Shown piece by piece: positions 12,101 to 61,811 of a DNA stretch of 64,000 nt; the stretch's first letter is position 1; each line of letters starts with the position of its first letter. The position numbers and the translations under genes were made by a program. The notes below the pieces were generated by a model. It made no database searches, had not been told where the DNA came from, and was given only the letters and a program-made list of their open reading frames with translations. Source of the DNA: Aplysia californica (lineage: Eukaryota); NCBI RefSeq assembly GCF_000002075.1, contig NW_004797854.1, positions 4,704-68,703 on the forward strand, read 5' to 3'.

Positions 12101-12206
12101 CAAGAGCGACCGCTTTCAATTTGATCGTATGGCTCGTCTTTGCACATGGAAGTACGCCATGCATGATTATGTCATGGCTCTCAACATTGATCCTGATGGA
12201 GTTTAG
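3200..12206 (+). CDS. morgue: Morgue-like protein: zinc-finger motif + F-box + variant ubiquitin-conjugating (E2) domain with Cys->Gly active site; 5' end not resolved
   Basis: Exons with AG/GT sites and consistent phases: 3200-3337 (QYESCMMCSGFYGKSFGQPVCSTCHLFLF..), 6500-6583, 7386(or 7392)-7515, 8166-8355 (F-box LPPE|VLLLVFKNLDDISLWVASNVCTRWRQIL), 8979-9027, 9721-9923 (RRLRSELK..GPQGSPYEGGLF), 11897-12206 (YPMRPPKVRFITKIFHPNISRHGDVGLD..). The HPN..G-x-x-C-LD cysteine is Gly (GGA 11973-11975). This domain order plus the Gly substitution is the hallmark of Drosophila Morgue. The start is either the ATGs in the 3200 exon or an unidentified upstream exon. Confidence 0.9.
3673..4354. mobile_element. 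Non-autonomous TIR element (Sola1-like, ATAT TSD) containing a nested TTAA MITE
   Basis: TIR GTG..GGTG(G/A)AATCAGGCGCTCGTCAA at both ends, flanked by ATAT. Internal sequence is similar to the inverted copy at 59867-60953. Confidence 0.7.
4031..4269. mobile_element. piggyBac-type MITE
   Basis: TTAA|CCCTATCC...GGATAGGA|TTAA. Confidence 0.6.
4851..6352 (+). mobile_element. Degenerate Tc1-family DNA transposon in a morgue intron
   Basis: About 24-bp TIRs CTC(T/A)TTTCCAAAAGAAACTTGACA with TA at the right end. Broken transposase from about 5190: MPRLSADERGRAVGHLEAG.., DRPRSGRSRVTT, VLFTDESRF, QQDNARAH, NPIENVWDIL..CRAVIAAGGGHTRY, with frameshifts and deletions. Confidence 0.9.
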
Positions 12207-15252: not shown

Positions 15253-17605
15253 CATGAAATTATAAAAAGGCTCTCTTGTGATCAAACGTGGGATAACCCA
15301 CATTGAATCAAAGACATTTTTAAAGCAAAGGTCACATAGAGAAACAAACTGTCAGCTAAAATAACACAAACATCTTTGAAGATCAATATGACCTTTCAAT
15401 CATCTGCCACCCTCATCACCCCTTTTTATCTCTTCATGTCCTTGAGCATACACCATCACTATCACTCACACTCAATCACACCAAATTACCCGTGACTGAG
15501 CATTCAGCATGTATTTCTACATAACCTCAAAAAATTTTACACCATGGCCCAACACACATTTTGCATACTTGAAAATATACCCCCACCCCCCACCCTCCAA
15601 ACACATGTACACTTACAAGGTATCAAGGCACCATGTTGTCACAGTAACTCATAAATCAGCAATCTCATAATTAGAGAAAACAGAAGAAAAAAATACATCC
15701 ACAGCAAAGACAAAAGGATACAGAATAGAGGTACAGAATATAACGCACAAACTCAAAAGAGCAAACTCAAAAGGCAGTAAATATAGCTCTATTATAATAA
15801 ATTCTAAGACATTCACTCAAAACTTATAATGCACGTCTCGTTATCCCATGTTCTCATACTTGAAAACATATATTACACAACAACTTTTGGTACCAAAATT
15901 TTTAATTTAAAAAAAAGTATATTATATATTATATTGTATGTGCCATGAAGACAAAAAGTTGCTTTTTAAAATAAAATGACACTATTTTTAGACGTCCAGG
16001 GTTTTGCTCTAAAACTCTTCATAAGTAGTGAGAGGTATGATTTATGATTACATGTTACATGAAGACGGGAAAAAGGAGAACACAGTTTTTTTATAACAGA
16101 TCTATACTATGAACACAATATATTGTCAACATTAATTCAAGTAACAGTATTTCAAGCTAACTTTGGTTTCAGAATGTTATACAACAAAAATAAGAAAAGA
16201 ATAAGTATAGGAAGTGAACAAAAGGCAATTGAGTATATAACTTTTATAAGGTTATGAACACTGCGCACACATATATTCGATATATAAAAAAACCCCCAAC
16301 CCCACACTCAAAAAAATGCAGTACAGTGCCAAACCATAGGAACTCTCTTTCTTTCACTTTCTGTTGTCTTTCTCTCTCACACGTCGACTATAAAATTATA
16401 ACTAAATGAGGACCTGAAACAAAGATTATAGCTTTAACAAATATGTCATAAAAATTACGAATCTTTACCTTTCAAAACAAGTTTCTTCTTTCTCCCTCTT
16501 TATTTCTTCAATATTAAATCAAAATGTATCTAAAGACAGTTTTTTTCCCCCATTATGCCTTCATCAAAGGTCATTAAGGTGCCAGCGATGTGAAAGCCTG
16601 TTCAGTAGAAACTTTACACAAATATAATACTGCTGTTTGACTTAGCAAAAACATACATACATGATAAAATTATGACAATAATTGCCTAAATTTACCGTTT
16701 CATTTTAAGATTGCAAAGCTTGTACATTAATATTGATCGAATGTTCAGTTTTTAAACCATAAATAAGATGTCACAATCACTCTTCTCACTTCAGGAGTGA
16801 TCTAAATGAAAAGTGCAAAGGCAACTGGCCATTTCATGAGAATCTAGAGACTTAAAGTATCAGAAAACCAGAAATTTACAGACAATGCAACTACCTTAGC
16901 TGGTGCCTCTGTACACAAATTACTGCCACAGTAAGTTCTGTGACGACATGTGACCTGTCATCATTGCATTCCACCCTACACGAGTGGTCCCAATCAAGAT
17001 GAGTTGAGATGGATATGACTCTGACATGAGTCAGTTCAACAATAGAAATGACTGAAGAACTAAAGAAAGAAAAGAAAGAAACAAGAAACATGGAAATTAT
17101 GGTCTTGTCCAAGGGCTGGGCAGCACAAACATGTAGTTTAATCGTAATGACCACGACCCCCCCCCAGCAAAATAACTCAGGGTAAAATGGAGTAGTGTAA
17201 TTTGCCTTTTTCCTAGGCCTGTCACAGGAATGCCCTTTAACATGTAAGCAGATGTTACTAGTGTTCATGATAAAATTTGAAGACCCACATTTCCAAAGTG
17301 ATAAACAGCAAAGTTATTGACATCAGTACAATGAGATGCCTTAACCTTTCAAGTGACCTTTTAGTCCCCATGGAACAAGGGTGGCACTTGATGCCGAAGA
17401 ACTTAAAAGACATTACTGGACTATGGACCAGAAATAACCAAATGAAAGAAGAAATTTGGGAACATTCACTGTAGGATAGTTGAAGTTCCAGAAACATCCA
17501 GACATGAAACAAGCACTACCCTGAAGTAATATGGGCTGGTCAGATACAAGAGGTGGGCCGTGATAGCGTCGGGTATAACTACACTGCAGCTCAATTTACA
17601 GATTT

Positions 17606-20600
17606 TTAGCCCAGGTACTGCTTGGCTAAGGCCCTGAGGAATTTCGTCTTTCGTACATGGACAGCCCGGCGCTGAATCTGATCTGGGTTGTTGGAATTGA
17701 TGTCCATCTGACTGAGAGCGCGGAGGGCAGCCTGACGTTTGTCCATCTCTCCCTTTCGGGTGTGCAAGTGCACCAGAAATTCTAGTATACTGACATCCCA
17801 AAGGCAGCAGTAGTAGGCGTCCATGGCGTCGTAGACATTCCGTTCTTGCAAGGCTTTGAAGGCAGTGCTGTAGTCCACCTCGTCGAGGAATTGACACAGC
17901 ACGGCCACCTGGGTGTGGCACTGCTGATACGAGCAGCACTTGATCATACGTCGGTAGATAGTGTCGTCATAGATAGACTTGGGCACAGGACAGGTGAAGA
18001 AGTCGGTGGCAACCACACCTGTAACAAGGGCAATTTGAAATGAGACCATTCTACTTTACGGAACAACGAACTAGTTAACTAATAATAATTTAAAGAATTA
18101 AGAAAGCATCTTCGAATACAAAGGAAAATATTTAAAGCTTTTTTAATACTTTCTTTCATGAGGGAAAAGACTTTTTTTTCCTATAAGATATACTTCCCAT
18201 ACAGCAAATGAAATCACGGAGCACAATTTCCAGGACAGGGGTCAGTTGAAATATGTTTTATAGGATGGACATGTTCAAGTACAATACACAACAGAATTTG
18301 ATTTGATAGAAAATGTCCCTGGTCAGTATAGCACCACATCTGTCACAGCAAGACTATTTCAAAGACAGGATTCCACTTAAATCAAGTGGTTAGCATTTCA
18401 GAAGACTAAAAATGAAAGAAATCCCACTATCTTCGCTAGAGATTAGAACTCGGGACGATGGCTCTATGAAATAGATGCAATACCTCCTACTGCACAGTAA
18501 AAGAAATTACATTTTTTCAAAGAATGGTCAATAAATATATATATTTCCCACAACTACAACCATAGTTATCTTTCAACAACTTTCAGTATTTCAGAACATC
18601 ACTAACACAAACAAATAATTTCTAATGCTTATTTGAGAAATAAACAAATTGCTATTGTGTATGTTATCAATATATCAAAAGTTAAAAATAGATAAAAAGC
18701 TGTGTTGTGGTTTGGGACTTTGCCTTCTCATGCAAAAAACTTAGTTTGATTCCAAAGTGGGGAAAATTTAAATGTAATTACTCAGTCTTTCTGCTGAAAT
18801 GAAGTATCCTTTTCAGCCCAAGTTTGCCCTATATGATCTAAACAGTGTTTAAACAGGTATACTAAACCAGAAGAATAAAATCAGCTTACCTGACTCAAGG
18901 TAAAATTTCATTGCCGTAGAATGCTGGCCTTCTACAAAGTAGATGTCTGCCTGTGTTCTCAGCCAGGCAGGCTGAGTGGGGTCCACCCTCAAACTGTGAG
19001 ACAGTAGCATCTTCATGGTTTCCTCCACAGAAGACACGGTGCCAATGGATACGTTTATCGCCGTCGGCCACAGATTCACGTATTCTGTGTTAATCTCACT
19101 TGTGATATCATCCTTGAGGATGCAGTAGAGTTTGGTGAAAAGAGAAATGAGGATGGAGAGGAGCATAGGCTCTTTGATTTTCTGAACGAAGCTGATGAAA
19201 AGATTTCGTGGCAGCAGTCCGTACTGTTGGTCCCTCCTCATTGCACTGTCTCGAGTGGTCTGGGGTCGCTTGGCATTTCCTGTGCACAAAGATTGCATAA
19301 AAATCAGAAATAGACAAGGACAGAAATATCGCAACTGATAACACCTGAAAAGAAAGAGGGGAGAGCGATATATTTGATCTGATATTGCATATTTTGTGCC
19401 TCCACCAACACATTAAGATAATATAGGTGATGGGCTACTTCTACCCTGCCTGTCAGGATCAGTCTGGGGTTGAGAGAGACACAATACCTTCGAAGAAAGA
19501 CAAAAATACTCAGTATTATAGACCTCACAACCAGGGAACTGTGAAAAGCCTAATCATTGCACAACAGATGTCGATAAGAACAAAAAAAAAAAAGAAGAAG
19601 AATCAAGAATAAAATGAACTTCAAACTACACAAAAGCAGCATACCTGGTTGATACACTCCTAGGACAGCATCCCACAGCTCACGAGCTTGCTTGCGTACA
19701 TTTTTCTTTTGTACGATCTCTTTGACCAGGCATGCCATGAACCGGGAAAGCTGCAACAGTTTGAACATTCCAAGTTCATGATTTTGATAGAACATATTTC
19801 ATCAGATGTACTAAGCCCAAAATTTTGAATTTTAAAAAAATAGCCGTTTTCAACCTTTAGTATAGTTCGTTGTGCTCACTCAAGCAATAAGCAATATTTT
19901 GTCAAAATTCAAATGCTAAATGTTGAAAAAAGCAAGAAAAGATATGTAAAGTAGGTAAACCTGTTAAAAGAGTGAAAATGATTTTTTCTCGCTCCTGGAA
20001 AATTTTGCTTTCTGGGATTAGTACAATTGAACAACTAGCCATTGATTTACTTTGAATGATAAGGGAGCAACACCAGAAAAAGAGATTATGCAAATGAAAA
20101 CAGATGCTACTTCTTTTTCTTTATCAACGAACCAATAAACCCTGTTTGTAGAGGGAATATCCTTCTTCAGGAATGTCCTGCATGCAACTACAATACCAAG
20201 ACCATGGCCCATTTGCAGTAAAATTCAGAAACTTCTAGGATTCAATGAAAAGCAGAGAGATAGACAGAATAAACATAAAGAGAGATGTGAAGTGCCAAAT
20301 ATCTTACAGAATATCTGATTTATCACATATTTTAGGTTTTGAGAAAATTCAGGAAAAAAAGCACTCAAACCACAAGTGCTAGTCTTGTTCCAGAATATCT
20401 TGAGAGTAAAATAAATCTCACCTCAATGAAGCCATCGGCAGTGTTGCAGAGATCTGAGAGATATCCCCACTCCCGGATGTTACACAGGAAGGCTGAACAG
20501 TGCTCAATGACTTCTATACTGGGAGTTATATCTGGCGATTGAAGCAAGAGCTCGGGTAAGAAATAGAAAGACTTCAGGATGGATGAAGACGGTACAAATA

Positions 20601-23600
20601 GACTGCTTAGCGTAAAACTTCGCTAGATGCAGTTTTAAGACAGTAACATATGATAGAGTCCAGGAATTTTAAAAAAATCTGATTTTCTATAGATTCAAAC
20701 TGACAGAACATCTCTGGCCATGACATCAAAGAAGGCCTTGAGGACGCTTTAAAGCATTTTTTCCATACCTTGAGCGAAACTTATGAAATGCCAGGGATGA
20801 GGAGTTGGAGGCGAGGTAATGTTCAATACAAAAAGCTCTCTGATCTTTCCTAAAGTCAGCCAAGATCTCAGCTGGCAAAAGAAACTTGAGAAAAACAATA
20901 TTTGCAAACTTCGGTTGACTTGTTAGACTGCTGTAGCTCGCAATATGGCGCAATCGTTGAGACTTTTAGGAGCAGGCCTTATGCGAACTGGAGCGTCATG
21001 GGGACAAGGCTAAATATGGGTTGTTTTCTTATGCGTTATACAAAGCAAAACTATTCTGTGGAATTCTCTCAAATGAATATCAGACAAATTCCTTTTGGCT
21101 GCCAAATATAGTGTTCAAGTTTGAAACACAAAGCTTCAGTGTGGAGAAAAATATTGACAAAAAGATGATACGTTTTTTTTTTGATCACCCTGAATTTGGT
21201 TGTCCCCGTAGGACTATGCAATTGTGCGGCCGCATTTTTTCGCGTAATTCTGCAACACTGGCATAATTCGTCCCTCAAAACACGTACTAGCGTAAGCCAC
21301 ATTTTGTTAGTTTTGCAGGAGAGACGTTTAAAGATTTGAGCGATTTTCACCATCCCATTGTGGCGTCAAATATCCGACCCTGCCCTTAATATTTTGACAT
21401 AACGTGTGTGGTCCAATTACTTTTCAATTGGCTAGAAGCATCTTTGTGAGATTAGTAGGTTTTGAAGGAAAAATGACCTTTTTGTCCAATACGCTAGTAC
21501 GTGCTACATCAGTGAAAGCCTCGATGTGTGGCTTACGTTACTAGATTGTTGGATACGTTAGTACGTGCTTTTGTATTCTAAAGCATAATGCGTTCATTGC
21601 GTGGCTTACGCCTAAATGGTAACTTCCAAATAACAATAAAAATACAAAGAAAGATCGATTTGGTTTAAAATTCACGGGTTGTATTATCTGTAACAAATGA
21701 CAATGTTAACAACAACTCGGAATATACAGACGCCAACTGTACATGATCAAAAAATCAACTTAAAATTAAATAATCACTGCAGCTATCTACTGCTTAAACA
21801 AACGTTTCAATATGGACTATTCTTTTGTGAAACACTATCCTGTTTAATATGGGAAGCAGTGTTTTACTAAAAATAAAACAAGCTACAAAAAACTTGAGCT
21901 AGTAGATCTATGTGCTCACTAAATTTTCAAATTTGCAAAAACAAATAATATAGAATTCAGGGAACATTTCTACTAGAGTTAGAGCTCCACTTAGGCGTAT
22001 TGGGAACATGATCTTGCTGTACAGATGTAAATTCAATGACATATTTCAAAGACTAATAAGCAGTAACTCAGAAATAAAGTAGAAAATGTGAAATTAAATA
22101 CATTTTGTGTCATAACTTGACTGCCATATACTTAAGCTGGAGTTACACCTTAGCGAACAAAGTAAAATAGCTTCGCCCCAAAGGAGACCTTCACAGCCAA
22201 CTATAACTCATGGGGTAAGGAAAGATAAAAAGCTTTGTGCTCTTCCAGTTTAATTACTGGTGTGGGACCAGAACAGAGTGAAACCAAATCAGTTAATTTT
22301 TCTGTCGAAATGTTTGTTGGTCCTGAGTTCAGTTTCTGAAGTGCACAGTCCTTTACACTATTCTTCAGTCTCTTGAGGGACAGGCTTTTGAATTAAATGT
22401 CAAAGTGGCTCGTCTTGTTGTAGAAGACTTTATCTGGCTGTTCTTTAGTGACTCGCAGTTCCATGATATTGTTCCATGAAAATGTATCTTCCGTATCAGA
22501 TCCTCTTCGTGCGTCCAGGATTCTCAAGTCCTTTGATAAGCCTTTGAGATCCAGAAAGTCTTTAGACTGCATCTGATTCACCAGGTGAAGCTTTTGAGGT
22601 CGAGCGAGAGACATTACTGTTGCTACCTGAGAAGGAAGGAACAAATCCCCAGCCCTCTTCAGGGCATGTCCTGTTGCACTGTGTACAGAATCACCCTCGT
22701 TCTGACCATGGTTTGTTTCAAAGAACCTCAATGAAATCTCTTCAAGATTCACACTATTGTTCACAGTATACAACATCATCGAAGGTGTAATCGAATTTTT
22801 GTTCTGACCACTGCATCCATCGGCAAAAAGAAAAGCTTTTTTCATGCCACGGTTGTCATAAAATTCCAGGGCACGGTGGACTGTAGTTGAAATTTCCGAG
22901 GGTTCACGTTTGCTTTGCGTTTCATCCCAAGTGAAGCAGTGACAATCTCTGTTAGCAATGTTATAGAAAGTCAGGTTGTAGTTCGAAATTCTCCTTTTGT
23001 AAAAGATGGCGCTCTCCTGAGTCATAGGGAGGTAAATGACCTGCTGCAAATCAAAACTTGCACAGAGAATGTTTTCACTTTCCTGAGCTTCTTTCTTGCA
23101 TAGATGCTTTATTTCCCTGACCTTTTCTTTTGCTCCCACATGGATCTCAAACTTTTCCGTAAGACCTTTCTTTGTTTCTTCATTTCCTTGGTGATAATTG
23201 ACACAAAGAGAGCACTGGTCTTTCTTGGGTCGGTGGATTGACAGATTTGTACTTTTGAATACATCGTTTTATGTAGTGAAGCTTGATGGCCTTGTCCTTG
23301 GTATCCATTCCTGGATGAACATGTGGTACATGCTTGTGAACTCTTGTCCCAAATTCCTCTTCATTTTGGCTTCCTTCTGTTTATTTGATCTGAGTTTCTT
23401 TTCCTTTCTGAGTTCTTTCTCACTTCCCTCCACTGTGTACTGCTCGGGAACTGATCTTTGCATTCTTCCTCCCCCCTCATCAATGACTGTTTCCTTTGTC
23501 TGAAACTGATCGGGAGCATCAGTGTTCATATTCACACCAGTGGGAATCTTAAACTTTGAGGGCCTACCTACAGCTTTTACATGTTGTTGATTTTTTCCTT

Positions 23601-26600
23601 TGACCTTCTTCTGCTTTTTTTTCATGTTGAACTCACGATGCAATCTCTTTATTGAAATGATCAAAGCAAAGAAGGATTTCACAATCAGGACAAGCCGCCC
23701 ATACTTCAGCATTGCACCTTTTGACCTCGCATGTTCCAGGATTGAATTCCGGATCGCCATCTGAGTCGTAGCCTCACACTGACATTTCATCACTGCCTGC
23801 CTTACTAAGCATATCAGTGTCCTTGAAGCACATACATGCATCTATTTGTCCCTTAAAGTTCTCAGTGGCAGAAGGACACCCATGACTTTCTGCAGTCTGT
23901 AAGCTTAAGACTTCACCAGGGTTCTGAATGTCAATCAGAGTTTGAACAGTAGGGCTACATGTCAAAGAAAGAGTGGTTTTTCAGAGCGGGATCCCATTTG
24001 TAAACAAAGGACGAGTAAAAAGGGACTTCAAGAAGTGGAGTCTGAGCCTTCACTGCCTCACACGAAGCACGCTGCTCACGTGTGTAGTTTAGCTTGTCTT
24101 CCCGCTCTCTAGAAGTGCTGCATGATGTTTTTATTGCCATAGGCTTAGCCCTGGCAGTGTGGCTTACGTTAGTGTGTGCCGTATAATAAAAACACAACAT
24201 TGGGTCAAAGTGTGTGTCACGAACTAACGTAACCAACAGTGTGTTAGTACGTGCTGTATCTTTTTGTGGGCAAGTGGGATACGTTCAAACTGGAATCGAC
24301 TATATCTCAGCTATTTATTGCTCGATTCCTACCATCTTTTGAGAGGATGTAGTATCGGATAAAGGGAATCGCGTGATTGCTATAACTCGATTTCGGGTCA
24401 GATGTGGCTTACGTTAGTACGTGTTTAGAGGGACGAATTTTGGATTCCCCGCGTTTTTTCACGTTTTTTTCCCTTTTTTTCAAAAAACATTTAATTAACA
24501 CCTCGCCATGTGACTAAATGGAAGTAATCACCGTAATAAGTCACATTTAAGTGACAAGTTGGTCATTTCCCTTGTTAGAAGATCTTGGTTATGGGTTGGG
24601 ATTTGTTTCCTGAGCATGTTCAATTTTTCAATACATCAAAAGTTGTTGTTCTCATGTCTGCTGATGTTTCATGTTTGACAGGTGTCCCTGGTTTTAGTAA
24701 AGTGCCATCATCAGAGGTCCAGACGTCCTTTTTCGGGGGGGGGGGGTTTGTTGACATTTTCCTTTCCTCTATAGAGATCTAGATCTACAGCTGAAAGTTA
24801 CAGAGATTATATTTTTTGGTTGTTTTTTATTCTGACTGATGTGTATTGTTTTCTTTCCAAATACATGACAAATTACTGATACTGATATGTTCTGTAGCAC
24901 CTTTTGTTTTCAATTTTTCTGTACATAAAACATGAAAATTATGAAAATTCTTGCTGAAAAAATGCAAAACATGTCGCGAATGGTGTAACGATAACTTGCA
25001 TAATTTTTGCATAATTTTGCTTTTTTGCATAATATGGCCATCTAAATTTGCATAATTCTACGGGGACAGATTTGGCAGGCTAGTGGGTTAGCACGATGAC
25101 TGGTATTATATTTCACCAGGAAGCAGAACAGAACAACAGTCATCACCACCACCTACCAGATCTGCGACACTTTTCAGCGCTAATGTTTCTCCATGCATTG
25201 ACTATCGCTGAAAAAAATAAAGGGGAGCAGACCAAACCAGATGACCTATGAACCGCCCGTTTGATCAACTCTGTAGACAAGAGCACCACAGTCACCAGCC
25301 ATGTTTCTTTTTACCTTGACCCAGGCGTATGAGCGTGATGCACTGCTTCGCCTGCATGACCAGGTCCGGCATGCTGAGCTCCTCGCTGACCATCTGGTTG
25401 AAGGAAAACTGGCTCAGTTCAGCCAGCAGCACCTGCCAGCCCACGTGTTTGGCCCCAACGTATGACAGATCAGACAGGATGGACTCTGCCACACGGAGAA
25501 GCTGCCGTGCCCTCTCATAAATCTGTGAATTTGATTTTAGTAAATCACATCAACGTGTGTGGGCACATCCTAATGCTGAGGCAAGGAACAGTTTAGGTTT
25601 TAGTAAGGTTCTACGGCGCTCGCAACTGCTTAAGGTCATATGAGCGCCAAGGGGTGGATGTCAGAATAGAAGTCCAAACGGGGAATCAGGCTTACTCTGC
25701 TCACCTCTCCAGCCTCAACAGCACAAAGTCTGCTTTGACTATCAAGGCACCCCGGAAATAGCAGTTCACAAGAGAGTGACAAGCATACAGATGAAGTAGA
25801 GGAAAATGATGATAGTAAGGATGAGGAAGGGAATGGGGGGGCACCAACAGGCAAGTACAGGTAACACCAACACATAATAGTCATTCAGTTGGGAAAAAGA
25901 CAAAACAGAGCTGAAAGAGATGAATACAAAGGGATCAAGACCCAATAAGTAGCACCTTCCTGCCAACTGCAAAGGTATGGATGGGTCCGAAAGCATGAGT
26001 TTTTTTAACTTTATTAATAAAAATCCAGTCCTGCAGGCCACTTTATTAAGAATAGGCAAACACCCATTGTTCACAGAAATATACTGGCTACACAAAATAG
26101 AAAAAACCCAGTTGATAGAGTAATGGCAAACTGTTCAGTTCACGAAGTTTATCCCAGACAATGGCAGTACTGAAAGGTCAAGAAAGGGATCATAATTGGA
26201 GGGAAAAAAGTTACTTGGTGGGCAAATTTGTACAATTCAACATTGCCATCTTTTATCCATGAAGCAAACCCAGTCCACAAGAGAAAAGAAATTCACGATT
26301 TAAGTTGTAACTTATCTCTTCCTATACTTCTTCAGTCTAGCTTAAACGTGATCACACAGTTATACAATCCTAAACTATTACAAGGACATGCATCAAACAT
26401 TCCTCACAATCTTCTTTATGATGTAGAAACTGGTTTTCAGCTTACAGCCCACCAGTTCACATAAAGAAGAACAACAATTACGGAGTATTTTATTACAAAA
26501 AAAAAAAAGATTCAATTTGTAAGATTGGTCGGGATGAGCATTTAAAAGGTTATAGTGGTGTCTTTGCTTTCTCACGTGCATTTTCTTAAAAACAAACAAA

Positions 26601-47255: not shown

Positions 47256-49302
47256 ATGATCCTGCACTTGTTCACTTCAACTTTCCTAGGATTGCTACTT
47301 TTTCACAATTCTGACCAACAGTTCATCAATACAGGTGAGACAAAATTTAATTTCTACATCGCATTGTTTCGCTTATGAAATTCATAGACAGGAAAAATAC
47401 TCTTCTATTAAAATGCCATGATTCTCGGATATCTAAAGATTAATTAAAATTTAGTCACATCCCCTTTATTTCAAAACTTTCAATACATGGTAGGGTACTC
47501 CTAAGTATGCTTCTGGTTGATAATCAAATTATGGGCTTTTTAAATGACTCCATTTATTTTATTTTCTTCAAGTCTTAGTGTATTCTCTTCTATAATCAAT
47601 ACAAATGAATGGCACAGAGGAAAAACCGACCAACTCGCACATTAGAAATTAGAAATCGTGAGGGTGTCAATTTTCTGTTCAACTGTTGGTTGATTAATGT
47701 TTTATTTCCCTTTTAAAGGCTACCAATTTTCAAAAATGATAAACGAACATTCAAAACAGAATGAAGTAATGATTCTACTTAAGATTGATATCCTCAGAAT
47801 TCCCAGTTTGTGACTATGCCCCTGTTTTTCCCCCCTTCTTTTTGGACCCTTCAAATAGCCTACACGGGGCACACTGTTAAGTCAGTTGGTAATGTCCTGG
47901 AGTATGATGAGGCGTCGAATCGTATAGGAATATTATTGCGCTATGTTTTAAAAAAAATTAAGTTGTCATGTAATTAACCATTTAATATGGCTGTTGCCCT
48001 CTGGAAAATGATTTATATTAAAATCCCACGGATGCATCCTTGGTATCTTTACATTGTTATATGGTGTCACCCATACTGTACGTATGGATATACAAGCAGC
48101 ATGTACTCGTATACTGATTCCTCGACATCTGGGCTTACATACTGTACCTGTACAGCACTAAAACAGGCGAACCTGTCCAAGACGACCGTAAATTGTTATG
48201 GAAAAGTGGTCATCTTTGAGAGGTAGTCTCTTGAAAAATGTCATTATATTTTTTTTAAAGCACAGAGAGGGTTGGTAAGAAGTGGTCGTTTGCACAGATG
48301 GTTACGGTAATTGGGAAAGGTGGTCCTTATAGTAGGCTCGACTGTGTTTGTTTCCCTTGCACATCCGTCTTATGAAGCATCCGAAAAAGAAGAGGACCAG
48401 GATGACTAAAGAAAAGGGCAGACGGTACCACCTTTTGGGGCTGGCAGATTAATGACAAGACTTTTTAAAAATCGAACCTGTTCAAGACGACGACCCATTG
48501 CCGAGAGAAAAAGTGGTCATCTTAGAAACCTGGTCCGTTTAGACAATGTCATTAGAATAATATGATATAGGGAGGAATTTCGTTTGCCACCCCAAGAGAT
48601 AGTTTTCTTCCTACCACCGTAATAGTAATAGCCAGAGACCTTCGGGGAACTAGAAAAACAATAAGTGCGGACTCAATTTGGCGCGATTGACTGAAGCAGA
48701 CCGTACGAAGGCATAATGCTTCCTGCTGCACACTGACAAGCTCGTGTAGACTGGTAGGCCTACAACCACACTCAAAGTGGACGCTCAGAGACTGGGATGA
48801 AGTAATGTTTCCTGCCGAGTCTAGATTCTGCGTAAGTCATAATGATGAAAGAAGTGTACAGCAACCATCGGGTTACCAATGCGCAGTAACTTGTCACCAT
48901 GTCACCCACCTTGGCACAGACAGGTAAACGGATCTTATCTAAGTTTAAAATTCATCAGATACAGTAGAAGAGAATAAATAGGGTCTTAAAATAATATTTT
49001 AAAAAATTTGAATCACGTTTATATTTATATCAAGAGGATTTTTTTTCAACAGCCTCGTCAATTTGTAACCAAAGAAGTATCTATTACTACGGCACATGCC
49101 GCGTACAAAGATGTCTGGCCAATGAAACACTGCTCCAGGGCCCCAGTTTCTGTGATTTGTATAACTCTGTGGCATCCGTCGTGCGATGTGCACCAGCCGT
49201 GCGTAAGTAATGTTCTCCTCTGGTTTATTATAAAACATGTATCATTATTTTTTTAATCTCAAGAAAATGTGTTTAGTTTTGATGATATCGAACAGGTGCA
49301 AG

Positions 49303-49357
<55 letters not shown>

Positions 49358-52300: not shown

Positions 52301-55300
52301 GGCTGGATGAGGGGGAGGGGGCACCTCAAACACCATCAGAGGGGTGGGGCGTGGGGAGAGAGAAGAAGAGGGGACGGAGGAAGAGTCCACCTCGTCCTCC
52401 CCTAGAACTCTGAAACAGTTGGCGAGTGGCCCCTCGAAGGTGGTTACTACAGGGGTAGGAGGTACCTTCTTAGTTTTATTGCAGTTTCGCCTGTTGACCA
52501 CGGGCTCTTCGAGGTTGGCAGTAGAAGTACTGGCCGACGTCAATACCGGCCGGACTGGACTGCCTTTGCGTTTAACCGACCAGGGACCGGGGTCATAACT
52601 GTCGGGTAGACAGTCTTTCGAGCCTTCTGAAATGAGCAGCCATTTCGGGCTTTGACTCTTGGATGGTGCGTTCTTGGAACCAAGTGTTGGCGATTGTGAG
52701 AGAAAGAAAGGACTAGCACTAGTCTTTCATACCTTTTCAGGATGCCCGGTCTTGCCACGACGAGTACACACGTCTGCGTGTCGGCATCACGACTGGCCAC
52801 GGCCAAATTTCTGGCACTTGAAGCAGCGCAGATGGTTTTACACTTAGGGTTGCATGTCCAGGACCAGGTATGCTGCTCGAACAGTGGCTGGTGGGCAGCA
52901 CGAATCGAAAGTCAAAACAATTGTGTTCCTTTCAAGGGCAGTCTCGCCCCGCCGAAGAGTCATCTAGCGGGCTTCGACCACACCCTCACAATATCGCTAC
53001 AATTTTTTTCTGAAGAGCAGCCTTTCACCTCATGACTGCGGACGACGCTCTTCGAGCAGTTGAACTTCTTGTGTCTCCAAGATTCACAAGAATACCATGG
53101 AAGGTCGTGAGATCCAGGGGTCCAGTTATTTCTGTTTCATATGCAAGGAGTGCACTGGAAGACAGTTTTTGGACGTTGGCGGGGATGTGTCCCAGTGTCT
53201 GTGTTAAAGCATCTCCTGTTATGAAAATGGTTAGATCTGTGATCTTCTTCTGTGCATCGAAGTTGCGGATGGTCAAGTACGGCTGCTCTGGAGGCTCCCT
53301 GGGAGGAGGGAGAGCACAAGCAGCCGTAAAGATCGGTTTTCCTGGTTGTCTGCTCGGCTCGGTGGCTACACCCGCTTCTGCGAGCAGAAACTTTTTTAGT
53401 ATCCTTGGGGACTGGAGACGGGTCAGAATGTTTTGGAGGATTCAATGTGTGTTGGGATGCTCTTCGACTTCGGGGCTCCCCGCCCACCAACGAGTCAAAG
53501 AGGGGAAACATTGCTCGGATGACCAAAGCTGAGCCAGGGCTACTCTGGAGTTATACTCTCCATGAAAGTGTACTAGACCCTCGCATCAAGATTGACACAC
53601 GGATAAACTGGAGGGGCTTCAGCTCCCAACCGATTGAGTGGCATGGGCAGTACTACCCTCCCATCTAAGAGGAAAATCTGGGCCAAAGAGGTAAGTTGGC
53701 GAGGGACAGTCCGCAGACTGATCTCACTTCAACTACCAGGTACCCGGTTTCCACAGGTTGCACCCCACGGTCAACGAGGCGCCCATTTTGTGGGATGGAC
53801 GACCTCGACTTTTGCTGCACACGGGGTAAGCGGTGGAAGAAATGATAGAAGAAGGGAGAAAGGAGGAAGGAGAAAGAAGGAAGGAGAAGAGGAAAATGCA
53901 CCAAAAAAGATGTTGCACAAGGATCCCAGGGACAGTGGGTCTTTTCATATATCCCCAACCCACGGGTGAAGTAATAAACATTATAGGCACCCAATGCCCT
54001 TAAAAAACCATTTATACTCAGGAAGTCCCAATAATGGACCATTTGTGTACCTTTGTGCAAAAGGTCAGGAGGTCGTGAAGTCCACATAATGCAATGTCCC
54101 ACTAACGTTAGTAAAAAAACATACTGGACTAAAATTTTAGGTAGCTTCTTCAAATTTGGTGGACAATGATGTTTTAGTATCGTGGACTTACACTGTAAAT
54201 TTTGATTGATTTCACCCATAACTTTGGATGATATGGGGTGTCCACATAATGTAGGTCTGGGGCAATGTCCACNNNNNNNNNNNNNNNNNNNNNNNNNNNN
54301 NNNNNNNNNNNNNNNNNNNNNNNNNNNNNNNNNNNNNNNNNNNNNNNNNNNNNNNNNNNNNNNNNNNNNNNNNNNNNNNNNNNNNNNNNNNNNNNNNNNN
54401 NNNNNNNNNNNNNNNNNNNNNNNNNNNNNNNNNNNNNNNNNNNNNNNNNNNNNNNNNNNNNNNNNNNNNNNNNNNNNNNNNNNNNNNNNNNNNNNNNNNN
54501 NNNCATAGATCTACATCTCGATCGAAGGCGCATTATTTGGGATAAGTACCTTATCACATAAACACATCCTCGTTTCTTTCCTTCCCCAGCGTGCTGCTTG
54601 TTCGGGGGCAGGTGCCGTCGAGGATGCACGGTGTCCGAGGTTCAGTTTGGCGTGCAGACAGACTGCCGCGGCACTGCCACTCCGAGGTGCTGCATCAACG
54701 CCGGCCCTGCAAGACCGGCCGCTGTGACTACAACGACAGCCAGACCCCCGCCACTATCTGTGGCACAGAGGCAAGGACGTGAGTGAAACGTTTGACTTTG
54801 ACAGGAATACAAATCTAAATACTTTAACTTTAAGAATAACAACCTGTCCCCGTGGTTTTATGCATCCCGCGTAATTGCTCAAAATTTGATCTTTTTTTTC
54901 TTCAAATTAACAGAATCGCATAATTTCACATTTTTGGGTTCAGTTTGCATAATTTCATAATTTTTCTTGCATAAAACGACGGGCTGTTTTGAGTAGGCCG
55001 AGTGACTAAGAGTAATACCATGGGGTCAGTTAATTAAGTAGTATCTGCTCTACCAAAATCATAAGATTATTCGGAGTCTATATCAAGATATTCAAAGAAT
55101 GGCATTCGGAAAAGCTTGACGTGTTGAGAAACTCAATTTTTTTAACGTCAAATTTCTTAAGACTGGGTACTGAGGAAATAAAACTTTTTAAAATTTTGTG
55201 GTTGCCAATTTATTCTAAGCTCTATACGGAAAAGAAAGCTGGATGTTGCAGGCCATACATTCCAAGCGACATGCCAACTTCCGTTGCCCATACACATGTA

Positions 55301-58300
55301 AATGTGAAGCGTACTGACAAAATGAGTTACTTCTCGGATTCAGGCCTTAAGGAAATAGACACATCACACTTATAGGTGAAGTTTTTACAATTTATAAGTA
55401 TGAAACAAAAGGAGTGTTATACTTAAAGAATTTGGCATCAATAGAACATTTACCAATTTGACCTTAAAGTGTCAATTTTTGGTCAACATCTCCATTTGTG
55501 GACTGCGAGAAGTAACTCATTTTGTCAGCACGCCTCACAAATATTATGTATTGTGGACCAAGATGCATCGCACCCATTTGCTGAAAGATTAATCGTATGG
55601 CCAGGAACATAAAGGTCCTAAGTCACAAATTGTGCTAAAATACACTTCTTCATATACATGAAACACGAAAGGTGAGACCACACAAATCTACAACAATGTA
55701 GACGTCATACTTTCCCCTGGTCAGAATGTGGCGCCAATCCAGTCATCCAGCCGCGCGTGGTGGGCGGTGCCCCCGTTTCCCCTGGAAACTGGCCCTGGAT
55801 GGTGCGCTTCGTCTTCACCACAAACGCGCCCCAGGGCACGTGTGCCGGAGTGCTGGTGGATGATGACACTGTCATCACAGTGGCTCACTGCGTCGTCGGG
55901 TGAGTCTTTCAGCAAGTTCGTTTTTATTTTGATTGTTTGTTTGTTTGTTTGTTGTTGTTGTTGTTGTTTTAAATTACATGAATACGTGTACTATTTTTTT
56001 TCGTTTTTGTTAAATGTAGGCTAGGTGTTTTACGCCCCTATTTGCACAGAGGCGCACTGCGACGTCGGGTGAGACTTTCAGAAAGTTTTTTTTCTCTTTA
56101 TATTTGTGTAGTTGTTTTTTAAAAATTAATGCAAACTAGATGTTTTACGCCCCTATCGGCACAGTTACTTAGATCATTTAGGGAACAGGCTTCGACTCTG
56201 CTTGTCAGGACCAATCATGGTTGAGAGGAGAGGGATACAACGTCCCCGTGGAGAGACCGAGATACTCGATTAAAAAAAAAAATGTATTTCCAACACAAGG
56301 ATTGAACAAGGTCTTTAGCGTGCGACGGCGAAGCGCATAACCTCTACAACACAGACGCCTGTGGACACATTGCCAGGTGGAAGTTGAAACATTAATGATT
56401 TAACTGATAAATCTACATGTACTGTCTGTGTTTAAACTTCTGTCTATAACATGCGTAAGTCTAACCAGAAATCCAGGGGACAATGTGAACCAACAACACC
56501 AAACACAACTAGAGAACTAGAACAAAGTTTCTCAGAGCGTGTTGACATTTCGTTTGGTATGCTGGTCTACATTGTGAATGACCTTGGTTCAAATTTCCAC
56601 CAAGGTTTGGAGTTCTCAAGGCCCTCTACACATTTGCTTTGGTCCCGGAGTTAATTCGGAGGCCGCGTCACGACTAGACTAGCTTTCAGTGTTTTCATCA
56701 TCATAACAGTGCCAGACCTGAAACGGACATCGGCGATCGTGATTTTATATTCATTTCTCCGTTCGAATGCTCCGCAATTTCCTAGTATTATCCTGAGGTT
56801 TCCCCGTCACTCATCTATTTAGATTTTCCAAATACATTTCTCTGGGTCTACCCTCTTATTTGCCTTCTGTTGTTGTTTTGTTTTGTTTTTGTCCAGTGAT
56901 AGCAACTAAGCTCGGTTGATCAACGCCTTTATGTCGAGTTAAGTGTTCTGGAAACTATATTTGTCTCTTCCTAATTAATTGTTATCATTAGTGAGCTTCA
57001 AGGATGTTAGCTTGTTCAGGACTACATTTACCTAATCATTGATTTAAATTGGCCTACATTTATCTAGGCCTAATCAATTATTTAATTTTAAATTTTAATC
57101 CGTTCCCAATCTTCCACACAGGGTCCAGCCGAGCCAGATGCGAGTGTTTGTAGGAGACGTGAACGTTGCGGCCTTTGACCCTGACGAGGAGCTGGTGAAT
57201 GTTCTCAGCGTGGAGCTCAACGGGAACTACAGGCGTGGTGTCAGGGGTAAGATTATAAGAACTGATCTACTAAGGTCTTGATTTATTACTGTGAAAATGT
57301 CAAATGATTAAAGGTTCAACACCCGTATCAACCCAATTAGGTTATTTCAGAGGCGTGACCTCCGAGTGTTACGTCCATCTTCGAAAGGACCAAGTCAATT
57401 AAGAAATTCGTGTGAGGTGCCCTTCTCAAGGACACAACCACGGACCAAACTGAGGCTGCTTTAGCCACCGAACCTGCAATTTCACTTTTGGCTACCGACG
57501 CCACCATCATTTACCGCTGTACCCAACCACACATTTCTTATACATGTACCTATCCCCGTGATTTTATGCACCCCGCACAATCTAGCAAAAAAAAATAAAT
57601 TTTTGTGTGCATACTTTCTGATTATTTAAATATTTCCCTTTATCATTCTTTATTAAAATTAACAGAATTGCATAATTTCACATTTTTAGGCTCAGTTTGC
57701 ATAATTTCAGAATTTTTGTGTGTGCATAAAACCGCGGGGACAGTTATACTTAAACATGTAATAAATTGTTGACCAATCGAATCGTTACTGCGCAATTACT
57801 TACATTATATTCGGAACAATGGGAGCAGAAATAATCCTAGTCCTGGACCAATTCCCGACTGGTCTGGGTTTATCGTCGTTTTCGTAGTCATTTGAGTACG
57901 GTTTGCGGTACACTTGTTCTATGCTTGGCGCCTGCGCTCGCGAGGGCACGTACGTACGCCTTCGCTCTTCCATCTCCGATAGTATAGGACTGTGTAAAGT
58001 TTGGGTGCGCTCATATGAGAATTACCTAATGCAGTTGCAAGCGCCGTAAAACACAAGTTATTTACCACAAATAAAATTGGGTTGGGGGGGGAGGTGTTCA
58101 TAGGAAGCGTATTGCCATATTGTCGTTTTGCATAATAGTAAACAGCATTGTAAAATGTACTGAGCTATCATTATGCCATTTTTGGCTTTAACGAACGCAT
58201 CCACACACCACATTTATAGTAAACGCTATCTCTTTTGTTAACATAATTTATTATACACCCCCCCCCCCCCCCCCAATCTTACGGTAGCTCGTTCGGCGTA

Positions 58301-61300
58301 GATAGCAGTGGACCGTGTTCAATCAGGCGGGATTTACAGTAGACCCCCGAATCGCGGTAGACCGTCATCCAAACCAGCATCGAGTATGTGTGTATATAAT
58401 ATATTTTAAAAATACTATATAGTAGGCCTATTATATAATATGCGTGTTTTTCTCTCTCTCACTCTCTCTCCCCCTCTCTGTGCGAGCGAGCGCGTGTATG
58501 CGTGCACACGCGCGCGTTGTGTGTGTGTGTGTGCGCGCGTGTGCAACACCAATCATATGCACAAGTGTTTGGACAATAATCATATTATAATTATTATTAT
58601 AATAATCGTATATATGATATGTGTTATAATCTTAACTATCTTATTTTCTTATTTCATCTGATTTCCAGGCAACGACTTTGCCGTGGTAAAACTTACTCGT
58701 CGCATCACGTTCACAAACAACAAGCTGCCTGCTTGTCTGCCAGACCCCGCCACACCCGTGAACCTGGGGGCCCAGTGTTTTGTGGCGGGCTGGGGCGTGG
58801 ATGAAACTGGACAGGGTAATACTAATAGTAACGGTTTTTTCACCCTTTGTGTTAATTATAGTTGATGCATTGTTTAACCCCCCTCCCCCCCCCTCTCTCT
58901 CCCTCTCTCTTTTGTTTGAATGAAAGTTCAACTACTCACTTGTATCACATACGCGTGTGACACGGACACATCATGCATATTATGATAAATTACACATACA
59001 CGCATAAGAATAATAAACATAGTATGTGTACATAGCCTACTGGTATAGGCCTATAAAATGTACAAATGTATTTCTATATCATTTAAATAATAATAAGTAT
59101 ATTACCTCTTTCCAACCCTTTGGCAATAATACATGAATACATGTAATTGGTCCAGGAATATTTTATAATTAAAAAAAAAACTGCAGGAAAATGTTACACA
59201 GTGTCTGTATAATTCTATCCCGTCCCGACAGTAATAGCAATGTATAATAAATATATATATACAGCGGCGTCTGAAATCTGTCGGAAAACGGGATTTATAA
59301 AAATCGGTTTATCAGGGTTTTCAAGTTAGTAGAGATCGAGACTGCTCAAATAGGAAGGGGGATAAAAATGAGAATTTACTCTTTTTCGGTTTACCGCTGT
59401 TTTCGGATAAGGCGGACTCCACTGTAACTTAGTGTAACAGAATACAGCACATTGAAAATGTTTAGTTAGTTTTAGCAACAGTTTAAAAAAAGTTTTAGTA
59501 GAGGTTTTTCGGCGCTCGCAACTGCATAAGGTCATATAAGCGCCAGAAGATTAGAGGTGTTACAAGAGAGTAACAAACATAAAAAAGAAGGAGGGGAGAT
59601 AAGGACGATAGATGTTTGATAGGAAAGAAAAAGCAAACCACACCAGAGCACCTGCCAACCACCCACAGTAAGAGTTTTACGGCAATTGCAGCACAAGAAG
59701 GTCATATAAGTGCCGAAGATGAGAGGTGTTACAAGAGAGTAACAAACACACAAAAAGAAGGAGGGGAGATAAAGATCATAGATTTTTTGCTTGGAAAGAA
59801 GAAGTAAACCACCCAAGAGCACTCGCCAACCACCCATCATTGAACATGCATTTCTGAACAATAAATGTGAGGGAGCGAGGTGAAATCAGGCACTCGTCAA
59901 AATAATGAAAGTCAAGAATAGGCATTTTCCCGCAGGTTTGGGAATTTTTATCTAATTTTTGTTTTCGGTTCAGCACTTTTCATGTTTATTAGAGTAAGAG
60001 CACATTTCGGAGTGGATTTTACTGAAAAAATGTTGATTAAAGGCAGAAGAAATGTAAATTTTCAGTTTCCATGGGCTCCCAAGCTAAAGAAATAACTCAA
60101 CTTTGGCGGCCATTTTCTCACTAATTTTACCTATGAGAAGGCAGATGACCCTTACCTCCTTCAATCGCACATATCTCAAGATAGAATTAGATGGATATTT
60201 TTTTCACCCAAAACAAGAAAAATGGACAGGCCTTAAGATGATACCATCAACCCAGTATGCCTGTTCCCGTAGCGATTGACGGGCTGCGTTTTTTCACGTA
60301 ATTCTGCAACATTTGTATAATTTTGGATTCCCCGCATTTTTTCACCTTTTTTTCCACAAACCAATTAATTAACGCCTCGCCATGTGACTAAAGGGAAGTA
60401 ATCACCGTAATAAGTCTCATTTAAGTGAAAAGTTGTTTTTTTCCATTGTTAGAAGATCTTGGTTATGGGTTGGGATTTTGTTCCTTGAGCATGTTCAATT
60501 TTTCAATCCATCAAAAGTTGTTCTCATGTCTGCTGATGTTTCATGTCAGACAGGTGTCCACGGTTTTAGTAATGTTCCAGCATCAGAGGTCCAGATGTCC
60601 TTTTTTTTTTTTTCATTTTTATTTCCCCTACAGAAATAGATCTAGATCTACAGGTGAAAGTTACTGAGATATTTTTTGGTTGTTTGTTTTTTTTACTGAT
60701 GTGTATTGTTTTTTTTCCAAATACACAAACTACAGATACTGATATGTTCTGTTTTACATTTTTCTGTACATAAAACATGAAAATCATGAAAATTCGTGTT
60801 GAAAAAGTGTAAAACATGTCGCAAATGGTGTTACGGTAACTTGCATAATTTGTTTTTTTTTGGGCATAATTTGGCCATCTAAATTTGCATAATTCTACGG
60901 GGACAGGTATGCCCAAAAATTGACGAGAGCCTGATTCCTCCGTGTCGTGCCTCAAATGATAATTATGCCACTCTTTCCTGTCCGAGCAGTGAGCCAGGTT
61001 CTCCGAGCGGCCCGTGTCCAGCAGATGGACACCACGGTGTGTAGTGCTATCCTAAGTGCAGTGAGCGGTAACCCAACAAGCACAGTTGTCCCCCAGGACG
61101 TCCTCTGTACAGACCCGACACAGACCCAGGCCGGTGCCTGTCTGGTNNNNNNNNNNNNNNNNNNNNNNNNNNNNNNNNNNNNNNNNNNNNNNNNNNNNNN
61201 NNNNNNNNNNNNNNNNNNNNNNNNNNNNNNNNNNNNNNNNNNNNNNNNNNNNNNNNNNNNNNNNNNNNNNNNNNNNNNNNNATGTGTATNNNNNNNNNNN

Positions 61301-61811
61301 NNNNNNNNNNNNNNNNNNNNNNNNNNNNNNNNNNNNNNNNNNNNNNNNNNNNNNNNNNNNNNNNNNNNNNNNNNNNNNNNNNNNNNNNNNNNNNNNNNNN
61401 NNNNNNNNNNNNNNNNNNNNNNNNNNNNNNNNNNNNNNNNNNNNNNNNNNNNNNNNNNNNNNNNNNNNNNNNNNNNNNNNNNNNNNNNNNNNNNNNNNNN
61501 NNNNNNNNNNNNNNNTGCATGAGAGCTTGTGCGCGCCGTGTGCGCGCTAGTGCGCAAGTGTAGGTCTATCTCAAACCTAAGAAAAGAGAAACATCAACAC
61601 ACAATTCCTGTACAAGAATGCTAATACATGAATATATATAATATAATGCCTTCCATGTTCACAGTACGACGATGGTGGAATGTTGGCGTGCCCAGACAGA
61701 AACGGCCGCTACACCCTAGAGGGACTGGTGTCCGAGTATTCCTGTGGCAACGTGCCCACTGTCTACACCAGGGTGTCAAACTACACCGAAGCCATCCTTG
61801 CCAGACTATAA
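47256..61811 (+). CDS. Secreted serine protease homolog (catalytically inactive S1A fold) with two N-terminal beta-defensin/clip-like Cys modules, 388 aa
   Basis: Exons: 47256-47334 ([26 protein letters not shown], signal-like), 49053-49202 ([49 protein letters not shown]), 54590-54778 ([42 protein letters not shown]..), 55725-55899 ([30 protein letters not shown]), 57122-57246, 58669-58815 ([20 protein letters not shown]), 60990-61144 (..VLC..AGACL), 61665-61811 ([27 protein letters not shown]). All GT-AG, phases 1,1,1,2,1,1,0, total 1167 nt with no internal stop. The protease-domain exons are secure; linkage of the first three exons is inferred from phase and composition. Confidence 0.85.
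48690..48870 (+). mobile_element. Short Tc1 transposase remnant
   Basis: Translates [28 protein letters not shown], resembling the H..WT..DW..V.FSDESRF motif. Confidence 0.55.
50345..51017 (+). mobile_element. 3' fragment of an RTE-clade LINE
   Basis: [63 protein letters not shown], frameshifted, ending in a (GTGAAG)n tail. Confidence 0.85.
51018..53970 (-). mobile_element. Degenerate I-group (I/Nimb-like) LINE: ORF1 zinc knuckles, APE endonuclease, RNase H remnant; RT deleted
   Basis: ORF1 remnants ([10 protein letters not shown].., GCSFQKARK), Pro-rich linker, ORF2 start [30 protein letters not shown], then an abrupt join near 51160 to an RNase H motif [24 protein letters not shown]. Outer boundaries approximate. 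Confidence 0.8.
55304..55538. mobile_element. 235-bp MITE with AAAT TSD (Sola1-like)
   Basis: 33-bp TIR GTGA(A/G)GCGT(A/G)CTGACAAAATGAGTTACTTCTCG, with AAAT on both flanks. Confidence 0.8.
57550..57743. mobile_element. Short MITE related to the CTGTCCCCG family (second copy at about 54844-54984)
   Basis: CT(A/G)TCCCCG..TTTTATGCA TIRs and a shared internal AATTGCATAATTTCACATTTTT motif. Confidence 0.65.
59495..59835 (-). repeat. Two tandem copies of a dispersed retroposon 3'-end repeat (family A); other copies at about 7725-7900, 8400-8560, 14050-14225(+), 61918-62000
   Basis: Shared GGTGTGGTTTG..CTCCCCTCCTTCTTTT..CTCTCTTGTAACAC..ATATGACCTTA..GCCGTAAAAC sequence. Confidence 0.8.
59867..60953. 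mobile_element. Sola1-like non-autonomous element carrying the nested 646-bp MITE
   Basis: TIR core AATCAGGC(A/T)CTCGTCAA, AAAT flanks, homologous to 3673-4354. Confidence 0.65.
60261..60906. mobile_element. 646-bp MITE, intact copy, 6-bp TSD GTATGC
   Basis: GTATGC|CTGTTCCCGTAG...CTACGGGGACAG|GTATGC, collinear with 21200-21268 plus 24440-25069. Confidence 0.85.

Follow-up and report, generated by a model that had tools for sequence, protein, structure and literature searches.

Within the 64,000-nucleotide stretch of Aplysia californica DNA analysed here (the window) lies an eight-exon gene that is real, conserved and mis-annotated. Its 388-residue product is best explained, on the sequences compared, as a single-copy, secreted serine protease homologue found throughout gastropods, in which two cysteine-rich modules and a Thr/Pro linker precede a trypsin fold that is catalytically dead by sequence. 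The structure of the gene, its orthology, the dead active site, the conserved residues of an activation switch and the linkage to active proteases can all be read from the genomes and proteins examined. The exons have AG/GT ends, are compatible in phase and stay in frame, bearing out the eight-exon model of the initial annotation (positions are those of the window):

47256-47334, plus strand: exon 1, predicted signal peptide, phase-1 donor; best of 8 candidates, placed as the orthologues' exon 1
49053-49202, plus strand: exon 2, cysteine module 1 with five Cys at spacing 10-4-12-11, phase 1-1, matched by the family profile
54590-54778, plus strand: exon 3, sixth Cys of module 1, cysteine module 2 and Thr/Pro linker, phase 1-1
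54595-54693, plus strand: cysteine module 2 within exon 3, spacing 5-3-12-7-0, beta-defensin-like
55725-55899, plus strand: exon 4, linker Cys C1 (55727), predicted activation site R/VVGG (55754-55768) and His57 (55886), exit phase 2
57122-57246, plus strand: exon 5, strands of the protease fold, exit phase 1
58669-58815, plus strand: exon 6, Asp102 (58674), Cys122 (58734) and GWG motif, exit phase 1
60990-61144, plus strand: exon 7, C168, C182 and C191, exit phase 0
61665-61811, plus strand: exon 8, Y193-D194-D195 (61665-61673), S214-E215-Y216 (61731-61739) and stop
53910-53934, plus strand: RefSeq first exon, nine codons, its ATG within the intron-2 LINE; in no orthologue
51000-54000 (approximate limits), minus strand: decayed LINE-like element lying within intron 2, contributing nothing to the protein

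The Aplysia exons were searched singly, while the full-length proteins compared were database entries. Orthologues were reached through exon 4, whose alignment with a divergent single-exon paralogue led to XP_012942850.1 and the Biomphalaria protein. Taken one by one, exons 2-8 scored far above 200 shuffles against the orthologues and exon 1 did not. Exon 1 is the sole hydrophobic candidate running from an ATG to a phase-1 donor within 7 kb upstream, and its terminal codon encodes Gln, the residue that likewise follows the signal peptide in orthologues. Exon 2 is 45% identical to its Biomphalaria counterpart (pairwise E 9e-11). Exon 7 has two tandem acceptors 3 bases apart, of which the second, the CAG at 60987-60989, is used by RefSeq and agrees with Biomphalaria. 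Pfam Trypsin matches exons 4, 6 and 8; exons 2 and 3 have no Pfam match, and each is single-copy in the Aplysia genome. Exon 3 alone found no homologue in a search limited by design, and exon 4 had no match in a metagenome scan of similarly limited design. A search of representatives with exon 3 returned one bacterial LRR protein only, a spurious hit, and probably missed the family because a different snail stands for the cluster there.

Three N gaps interrupt the locus. In this model all are intronic, with intron 2 holding one and intron 7 the other two; the exon 7 donor GT lies immediately 5' of one of them. Orthologues have no missing residues at the exon 2/3 and exon 7/8 junctions, and the Biomphalaria protein passes from module 1 to module 2 through a five-residue spacer and Pro-Cys-Cys, just as at the Aplysia exon 2/3 junction. 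Because the orthologues are continuous across both junctions, the gaps need hold no exon, and an exon hidden there was rejected. The claimed fusion of the cysteine modules to a protease fold is supported on two counts: RefSeq XP_012942850.1 joins exons 3-8, and an orthologous transcript, already spliced, links every part. The latter is a JGI contig of 1732 bases in which a single frame without introns encodes everything from the signal peptide through both modules and the linker to the protease fold; since it holds the entire architecture it supports the exon junction across the intron-2 gap. Four RNA runs mapped to the window gave coverage confined to intron repeats and no evidence on junctions, and one polyA library had zero reads over exons 3-4. 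Short interspersed repeats at 54814-55548 (intron 3) and 57460-58194 (intron 5) are abundant in these runs.

XP_012942850.1 lacks exons 1 and 2. Its start at 53910-53934 is most likely a false one that drops the signal peptide and module 1. The surrounding LINE-like element retains a zinc-knuckle remnant near 52825 and the start of an endonuclease at 52015 (Exo_endo_phos, E 0.098); an RTE-like LINE fragment lies at 50300-51000 on the plus strand of the same intron (DUF6451, weak). RefSeq names both the Aplysia gene and its Biomphalaria orthologue (XP_055891450.1) 'chymotrypsin-like elastase family member 2A', which is misleading in that it implies an active enzyme and leaves the modules unannotated. 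The Lymnaea model is split in two, and the Bulinus model has a wrong, repeat-derived N-terminus.

Elsewhere in the window are convergent exons for a ubiquitin-conjugating enzyme (11844-12206, plus strand) and the Integrator subunit INTS8 (17466-19413, minus strand), a frameshifted piggyBac-type transposase (39975-41746, minus strand; DDE_Tnp_1_7) and broken transposase-like open reading frames (22393-23841, minus strand; DUF7869, weak). At 46582-46830, 430-670 bases upstream of the ATG, lie a TATA box and two kB-like sites. Conservation of the kB sites was rejected, as they are missing from five orthologue upstream regions.

A family profile built from two proteins, XP_012942850.1 and the Biomphalaria orthologue, recovered a single orthogroup, clearly set off by score (214 vs 134 bits). 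It comprises Biomphalaria, Bulinus, Lymnaea, two Elysia, Candidula, Bradybaena, Littorina, Babylonia and two transcript-type contigs, so that orthologues occur in eight gastropod genera besides Aplysia, from both Heterobranchia and Caenogastropoda. None was found outside these two groups among 8000 candidates scored in a search that depends on shared words; in that search the family appeared in gastropods only, short of the lophotrochozoan range first proposed. The same eight-exon layout could be mapped in Biomphalaria, Elysia, Littorina and Babylonia; in the Biomphalaria orthologue a signal peptide precedes both modules, and in Lymnaea both module exons lie upstream of the split gene model. 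In a quick tree the protease domains of the orthologues group together as a single clade (SH-aLRT 99).

The RefSeq protein matches Pfam Trypsin at E 1.8e-40, and every disulfide cysteine of the fold is invariant. All orthologues retain His57 and Asp102 and replace Ser195 with Asp, leaving the catalytic triad incomplete in every member. The motif C-[LI]-[FY]-D-D-G occurs in all ten members that cover the region, with Gly193 changed to Phe or Tyr and Asp194 kept. Positions 214-216 read SEY, SQY, SEF or AEY instead of SWG and are followed by a two-residue deletion; residue 189 is Gly in Aplysia. Judged by established S1A structure, Asp at 195, an aromatic at 193 and the altered 214-216 would remove the nucleophile, distort the oxyanion hole and close S1. 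By these sequence criteria all orthologues are pseudoproteases, and the secreted pseudoprotease originally proposed is supported. Since identical substitutions occur in both gastropod groups, the rebuilt surface is under selection; its invariance suggests a binding or cofactor role, possibly related to defence, and points to an old, specific binding partner. The activation Arg at P1 is present in all full-length members and the linker Cys (C1) and Cys122 are conserved, in support of the activation site and C1-C122 pair proposed from the Aplysia sequence. In land snails the residues after this Arg are degenerate (LASG, IVPG, IVRG), and insertion of the new N-terminus may therefore not be essential.

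The N-terminal region contains 12 cysteines whose spacing is nearly fixed in the family (10/7, 4/3, 12/11, 13, 5, 0, 5, 3, 12, 7/6, 0), the fourth interval being 11 in Aplysia versus 13 in the family. The proposal of two cysteine modules needs correcting in one respect: exon 2 carries five cysteines and exon 3 seven, rather than each encoding a clean six-cysteine unit. Module 1 departs from the beta-defensin array ascribed to it. Its fifth and sixth cysteines, on different exons, are spaced C-x5-C with no terminal CC, and a helix is predicted between Cys4 and Cys5. Module 2 has six cysteines ending in CC at 5-3-12-6/7-0 in all members, and its sole PDB sequence match, at E 0.48-0.92, is a consensus beta-defensin (6MJV) with which all six cysteines align. 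Defensin_beta_2 is detected in seven of nine members, the best at E 0.003 and 18.3 bits, below the gathering cut-off of 22.2. The view that the modules are defensin-like rather than clip-like is supported for module 2 by its spacing, HMM signal and predicted fold, but the defensin assignment stays under every threshold and is weaker than first stated. By sequence, module 2 is beta-defensin-like at a level under the family cut-offs and module 1 is atypical.

An AlphaFold model of an orthologue N-terminus, built on a nine-sequence alignment, reached a moderate pLDDT of 74. Structure matches to it in VIA with Z of at least 2 were defensin-fold peptides in 22 of 23 cases, mostly on module 2 (rmsd 2.1-3.3 over 34-41 residues); the best were the C-terminal domain of an oyster big defensin (Z 3.6), crocodile CpoBD13 (3.5) and human beta-defensin 2 (3.4). 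Foldseek, at E above 1, and an Atlas shape search also gave defensin-type matches. Low fold scores are expected for 35-residue domains, and the matches to the model are consistent rather than significant; a defensin-type fold for module 2 is weakly supported. Folding module 2 from its single sequence gave low confidence and no structural match, and that result was discarded. Modules 1 and 2 are probably locked together as a single unit.

Big-defensin PF14862 does not match the locus, and the hydrophobic N-terminal domain is missing from all members. Genome-wide scans of Aplysia for Defensin_beta_2, Defensin_big and CLIP found no convincing locus and none at this gene, and CLIP-family HMMs (PF12032, PF18322, PF18398 and kin) matched neither the exons nor nine orthologue N-termini at E up to 10. 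No clip structure occurred among 23 VIA and 21 Foldseek rows for the pLDDT 74 model, whose module 1 the fold searches barely probed. A language-model search placed clip clusters at 0.83, a lead only. The possibility that the modules belong to an ordinary clip or serine protease homologue (SPH) family, entertained in the initial annotation, thus finds no backing in CLIP HMMs, cysteine spacing or clip-structure matches.

Downstream on the same scaffold are seven protease genes, 62-153 kb away and active by sequence, each with a signal peptide, TSP1 and a trypsin domain containing GDSGG:

G000:C584:128000-220000: seven-gene TSP1-protease tandem array, recognised by signal peptide, TSP1 exon and trypsin domain

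These genes are the best in-genome matches for exons 6 and 8, and a profile of the family's last exon ranks five of them first in the genome. The same protease subfamily adjoins the gene in Littorina (2.6 kb upstream) and Babylonia (7 kb upstream), where the upstream exons match the Aplysia array best; no such linkage was seen within 10 kb of it in Elysia, Lymnaea or Biomphalaria. Sequence comparison makes it most likely that the pseudoprotease is an old duplicate from this TSP1-protease subfamily with a different N-terminus, and the linkage may merely reflect tandem origin. Modules common to gene and array were rejected, since the array genes carry TSP1 exons. Most array genes seen have Asp189, so that their proteases could cut at the conserved Arg.

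Several features of these and other proteases were recorded in passing. Array genes have extra cysteines in CE(F/Y)PW and FDRC; one TSP1 exon (L042:3400) is frameshifted; and two genes have an additional short domain before TSP1 with no Pfam match, which we take to recall mollusc ADEL-type lectin repeats. An intronless, very divergent secreted trypsin-fold homologue with His57 changed to Asn (L038:2651-3556, G000:C142) had no close relative in the protein collection. A near-intronless LDLa/CUB-type modular protease occupies one 780-codon frame (L030, G000:C389:33400-35760), and a dispersed single-exon 'fibrinolytic enzyme' trypsin family (L031-L037) may consist of retrocopies.

As a possible reading that falls short of an even chance, we tentatively favour a secreted, Arg-cleaved protein that serves a protease reaction outside the cell as cofactor or adaptor without catalysing anything itself; defence or the response to wounding would be its probable setting. 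The protein would descend from the neighbouring active trypsin-like proteases, catalysis having been lost once before the split of Heterobranchia and Caenogastropoda, and would leave the cell as one chain. The cut at Arg-(I/V) would be made by a trypsin-like protease, plausibly a linked relative, whereupon the new N-terminus would pair with conserved Asp194 and order the activation domain while the C1-C122 bond held the module chain on the protease chain. Aromatic residue 193, Asp195, Glu215 and Tyr216 would form a closed acidic-aromatic binding surface, and the double module would attach the protein to a surface or to a partner. The two-chain form would then act as a non-catalytic cofactor or adaptor, as arthropod clip-SPHs do; insect clip-SPHs are cofactors activated by cleavage (PMC10540698, PMC11818254). 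The cleavage, the partner, the tissue and the immune role of the protein are what we infer. Strict single-copy conservation, unlike the pattern of fast-evolving immune effectors, counts against the defence cofactor reading.

That same conservation sits well with a cleavage-activated ligand of HGF/MSP type, whose active-site face would bind a receptor and whose modules would provide a second contact, in development, shell formation, repair or reproduction. HGF is known to pair a dead site with an intact Arg-(I/V) and Asp194, and here the dead site is conserved in a single-copy gene; yet kringle and PAN domains are absent and the best solved-structure matches are ordinary proteases, and we consider such a ligand unlikely. 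The defensin-type fold matches and the R..C...E signature would instead suit an azurocidin-like opsonin or antimicrobial that binds microbes or parasites directly with the defensin modules as its active part, where the initial annotation laid its emphasis, and the introns are in phase 1, like those of big-defensin and beta-defensin genes (PMC7203481). However, net charge (-2 to +3 for module 2, 0 to +5 for module 1) is low for lytic defensins, the modules being weakly charged, and spacing is fixed in one copy without diversification, so that this reading ranks a little lower in our estimation.

A decoy, chaperone or inhibitor that serves its active neighbours in a non-immune exocrine secretion (saliva, mucus, egg mass or gut) would also be in keeping with the gene's origin in the active array and its linkage there, and the double module might then inhibit a peptidase. 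The fold matches include the amylase inhibitor helianthamide, and double beta-defensin folds can inhibit peptidases, an example being the double-defensin carboxypeptidase inhibitor of ticks. That tick protein was recovered by no search, however, and we hold this role to be improbable. Renewed catalysis is the least credible option, and very improbable: His57, Asp102 and Asp195 are all invariant and might constitute a new catalytic site, but the oxyanion-hole Gly193 is Phe or Tyr, the S1 entrance is blocked by Tyr/Phe216 and the two-residue deletion, and we know of no S1A enzyme with an Asp nucleophile.

Beyond the cofactor reading, it is doubtful that true trans-defensin domains were recruited into a protease by phase 1-1 exon shuffling and that the protein heads or regulates an unrecognised extracellular protease cascade of gastropods paralleling the clip system. 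If true, the gene would supply a natural link from defensin to clip domains as well as a testable humoral-immunity candidate in schistosome-vector snails. The gene occurs in Biomphalaria, Bulinus and Lymnaea, which include schistosomiasis carriers and for which assays of knock-down and infection are established, and an extracellular protease regulator of snails would fill a gap in the picture of Biomphalaria immunity. Clip-type proteases have been reported from bivalves. In the literature searched, mostly outside subscription journals, we found no paper naming the accessions or the architecture and no report of a trans-defensin fold as a protease module, in line with the candidate undescribed protein first proposed; a gastropod defensin-module pseudoprotease is apparently undescribed. 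In the sections seen of a review of Biomphalaria immunity, clip domains and protease homologues are not mentioned (PMC8995041). An up-regulated B. pfeifferi 'chymotrypsin-like elastase family member' (PMC5685644) was considered and cannot be tied to this gene.

The trans-defensins (beta-defensins, the big-defensin C-terminal domain, panusins, AvBD11) resemble module 2 in their six cysteines ending in CC, in G-x-C-R with a Glu after Cys3 and in the predicted three-strand fold, and their genes share with this one a phase-1 intron before the cysteine exon. They are free peptides, whereas the gastropod modules lie inside a 388-residue protein, are weakly charged and fall below the Pfam cut-off; module 1 further departs from them in lacking the terminal CC and in its predicted helix, and the hydrophobic domain of big defensins is absent. 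Trans-defensins have been reviewed as free peptides or big defensins, in whose genes a phase-1 intron precedes the cysteine exon and for which exon shuffling is one proposed evolutionary route (PMC7203481).

The linker connecting the modules to the protease, encoded by exon 3, ends in a conserved QRQG. In overall layout the protein resembles the clip-SPHs (CLIPA, PPAF-II, masquerade, Manduca SPH1/2), which likewise have a signal peptide, one or more six-cysteine modules, a low-complexity linker and a disulfide-tethered dead trypsin domain, with activation by cleavage being predicted here. Unlike clip domains, the gastropod modules have neither a CLIP HMM match nor a clip structure match; fetched clip domains are spaced 9-5-(19-27)-9-0, as against 5-3-12-7-0 and 10-4-12-13-5, and gave no score against the module profile. 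Position 195 is mostly Gly in arthropod SPHs and Asp in the gastropod protein, whose closest in-genome kin are TSP1-proteases and whose protease domains stand apart from the clip proteases of a quick tree, all of them catalytic. HGF/MSP, haptoglobin and azurocidin each combine a dead S1A domain with a conserved, remodelled active site and a retained activation switch, and differ from the gastropod protein in their N-terminal domains. Among these systems, the protein resembles a clip-SPH in architecture but not in clip HMM or cysteine spacing, and is best read as working like a clip-SPH without being one.
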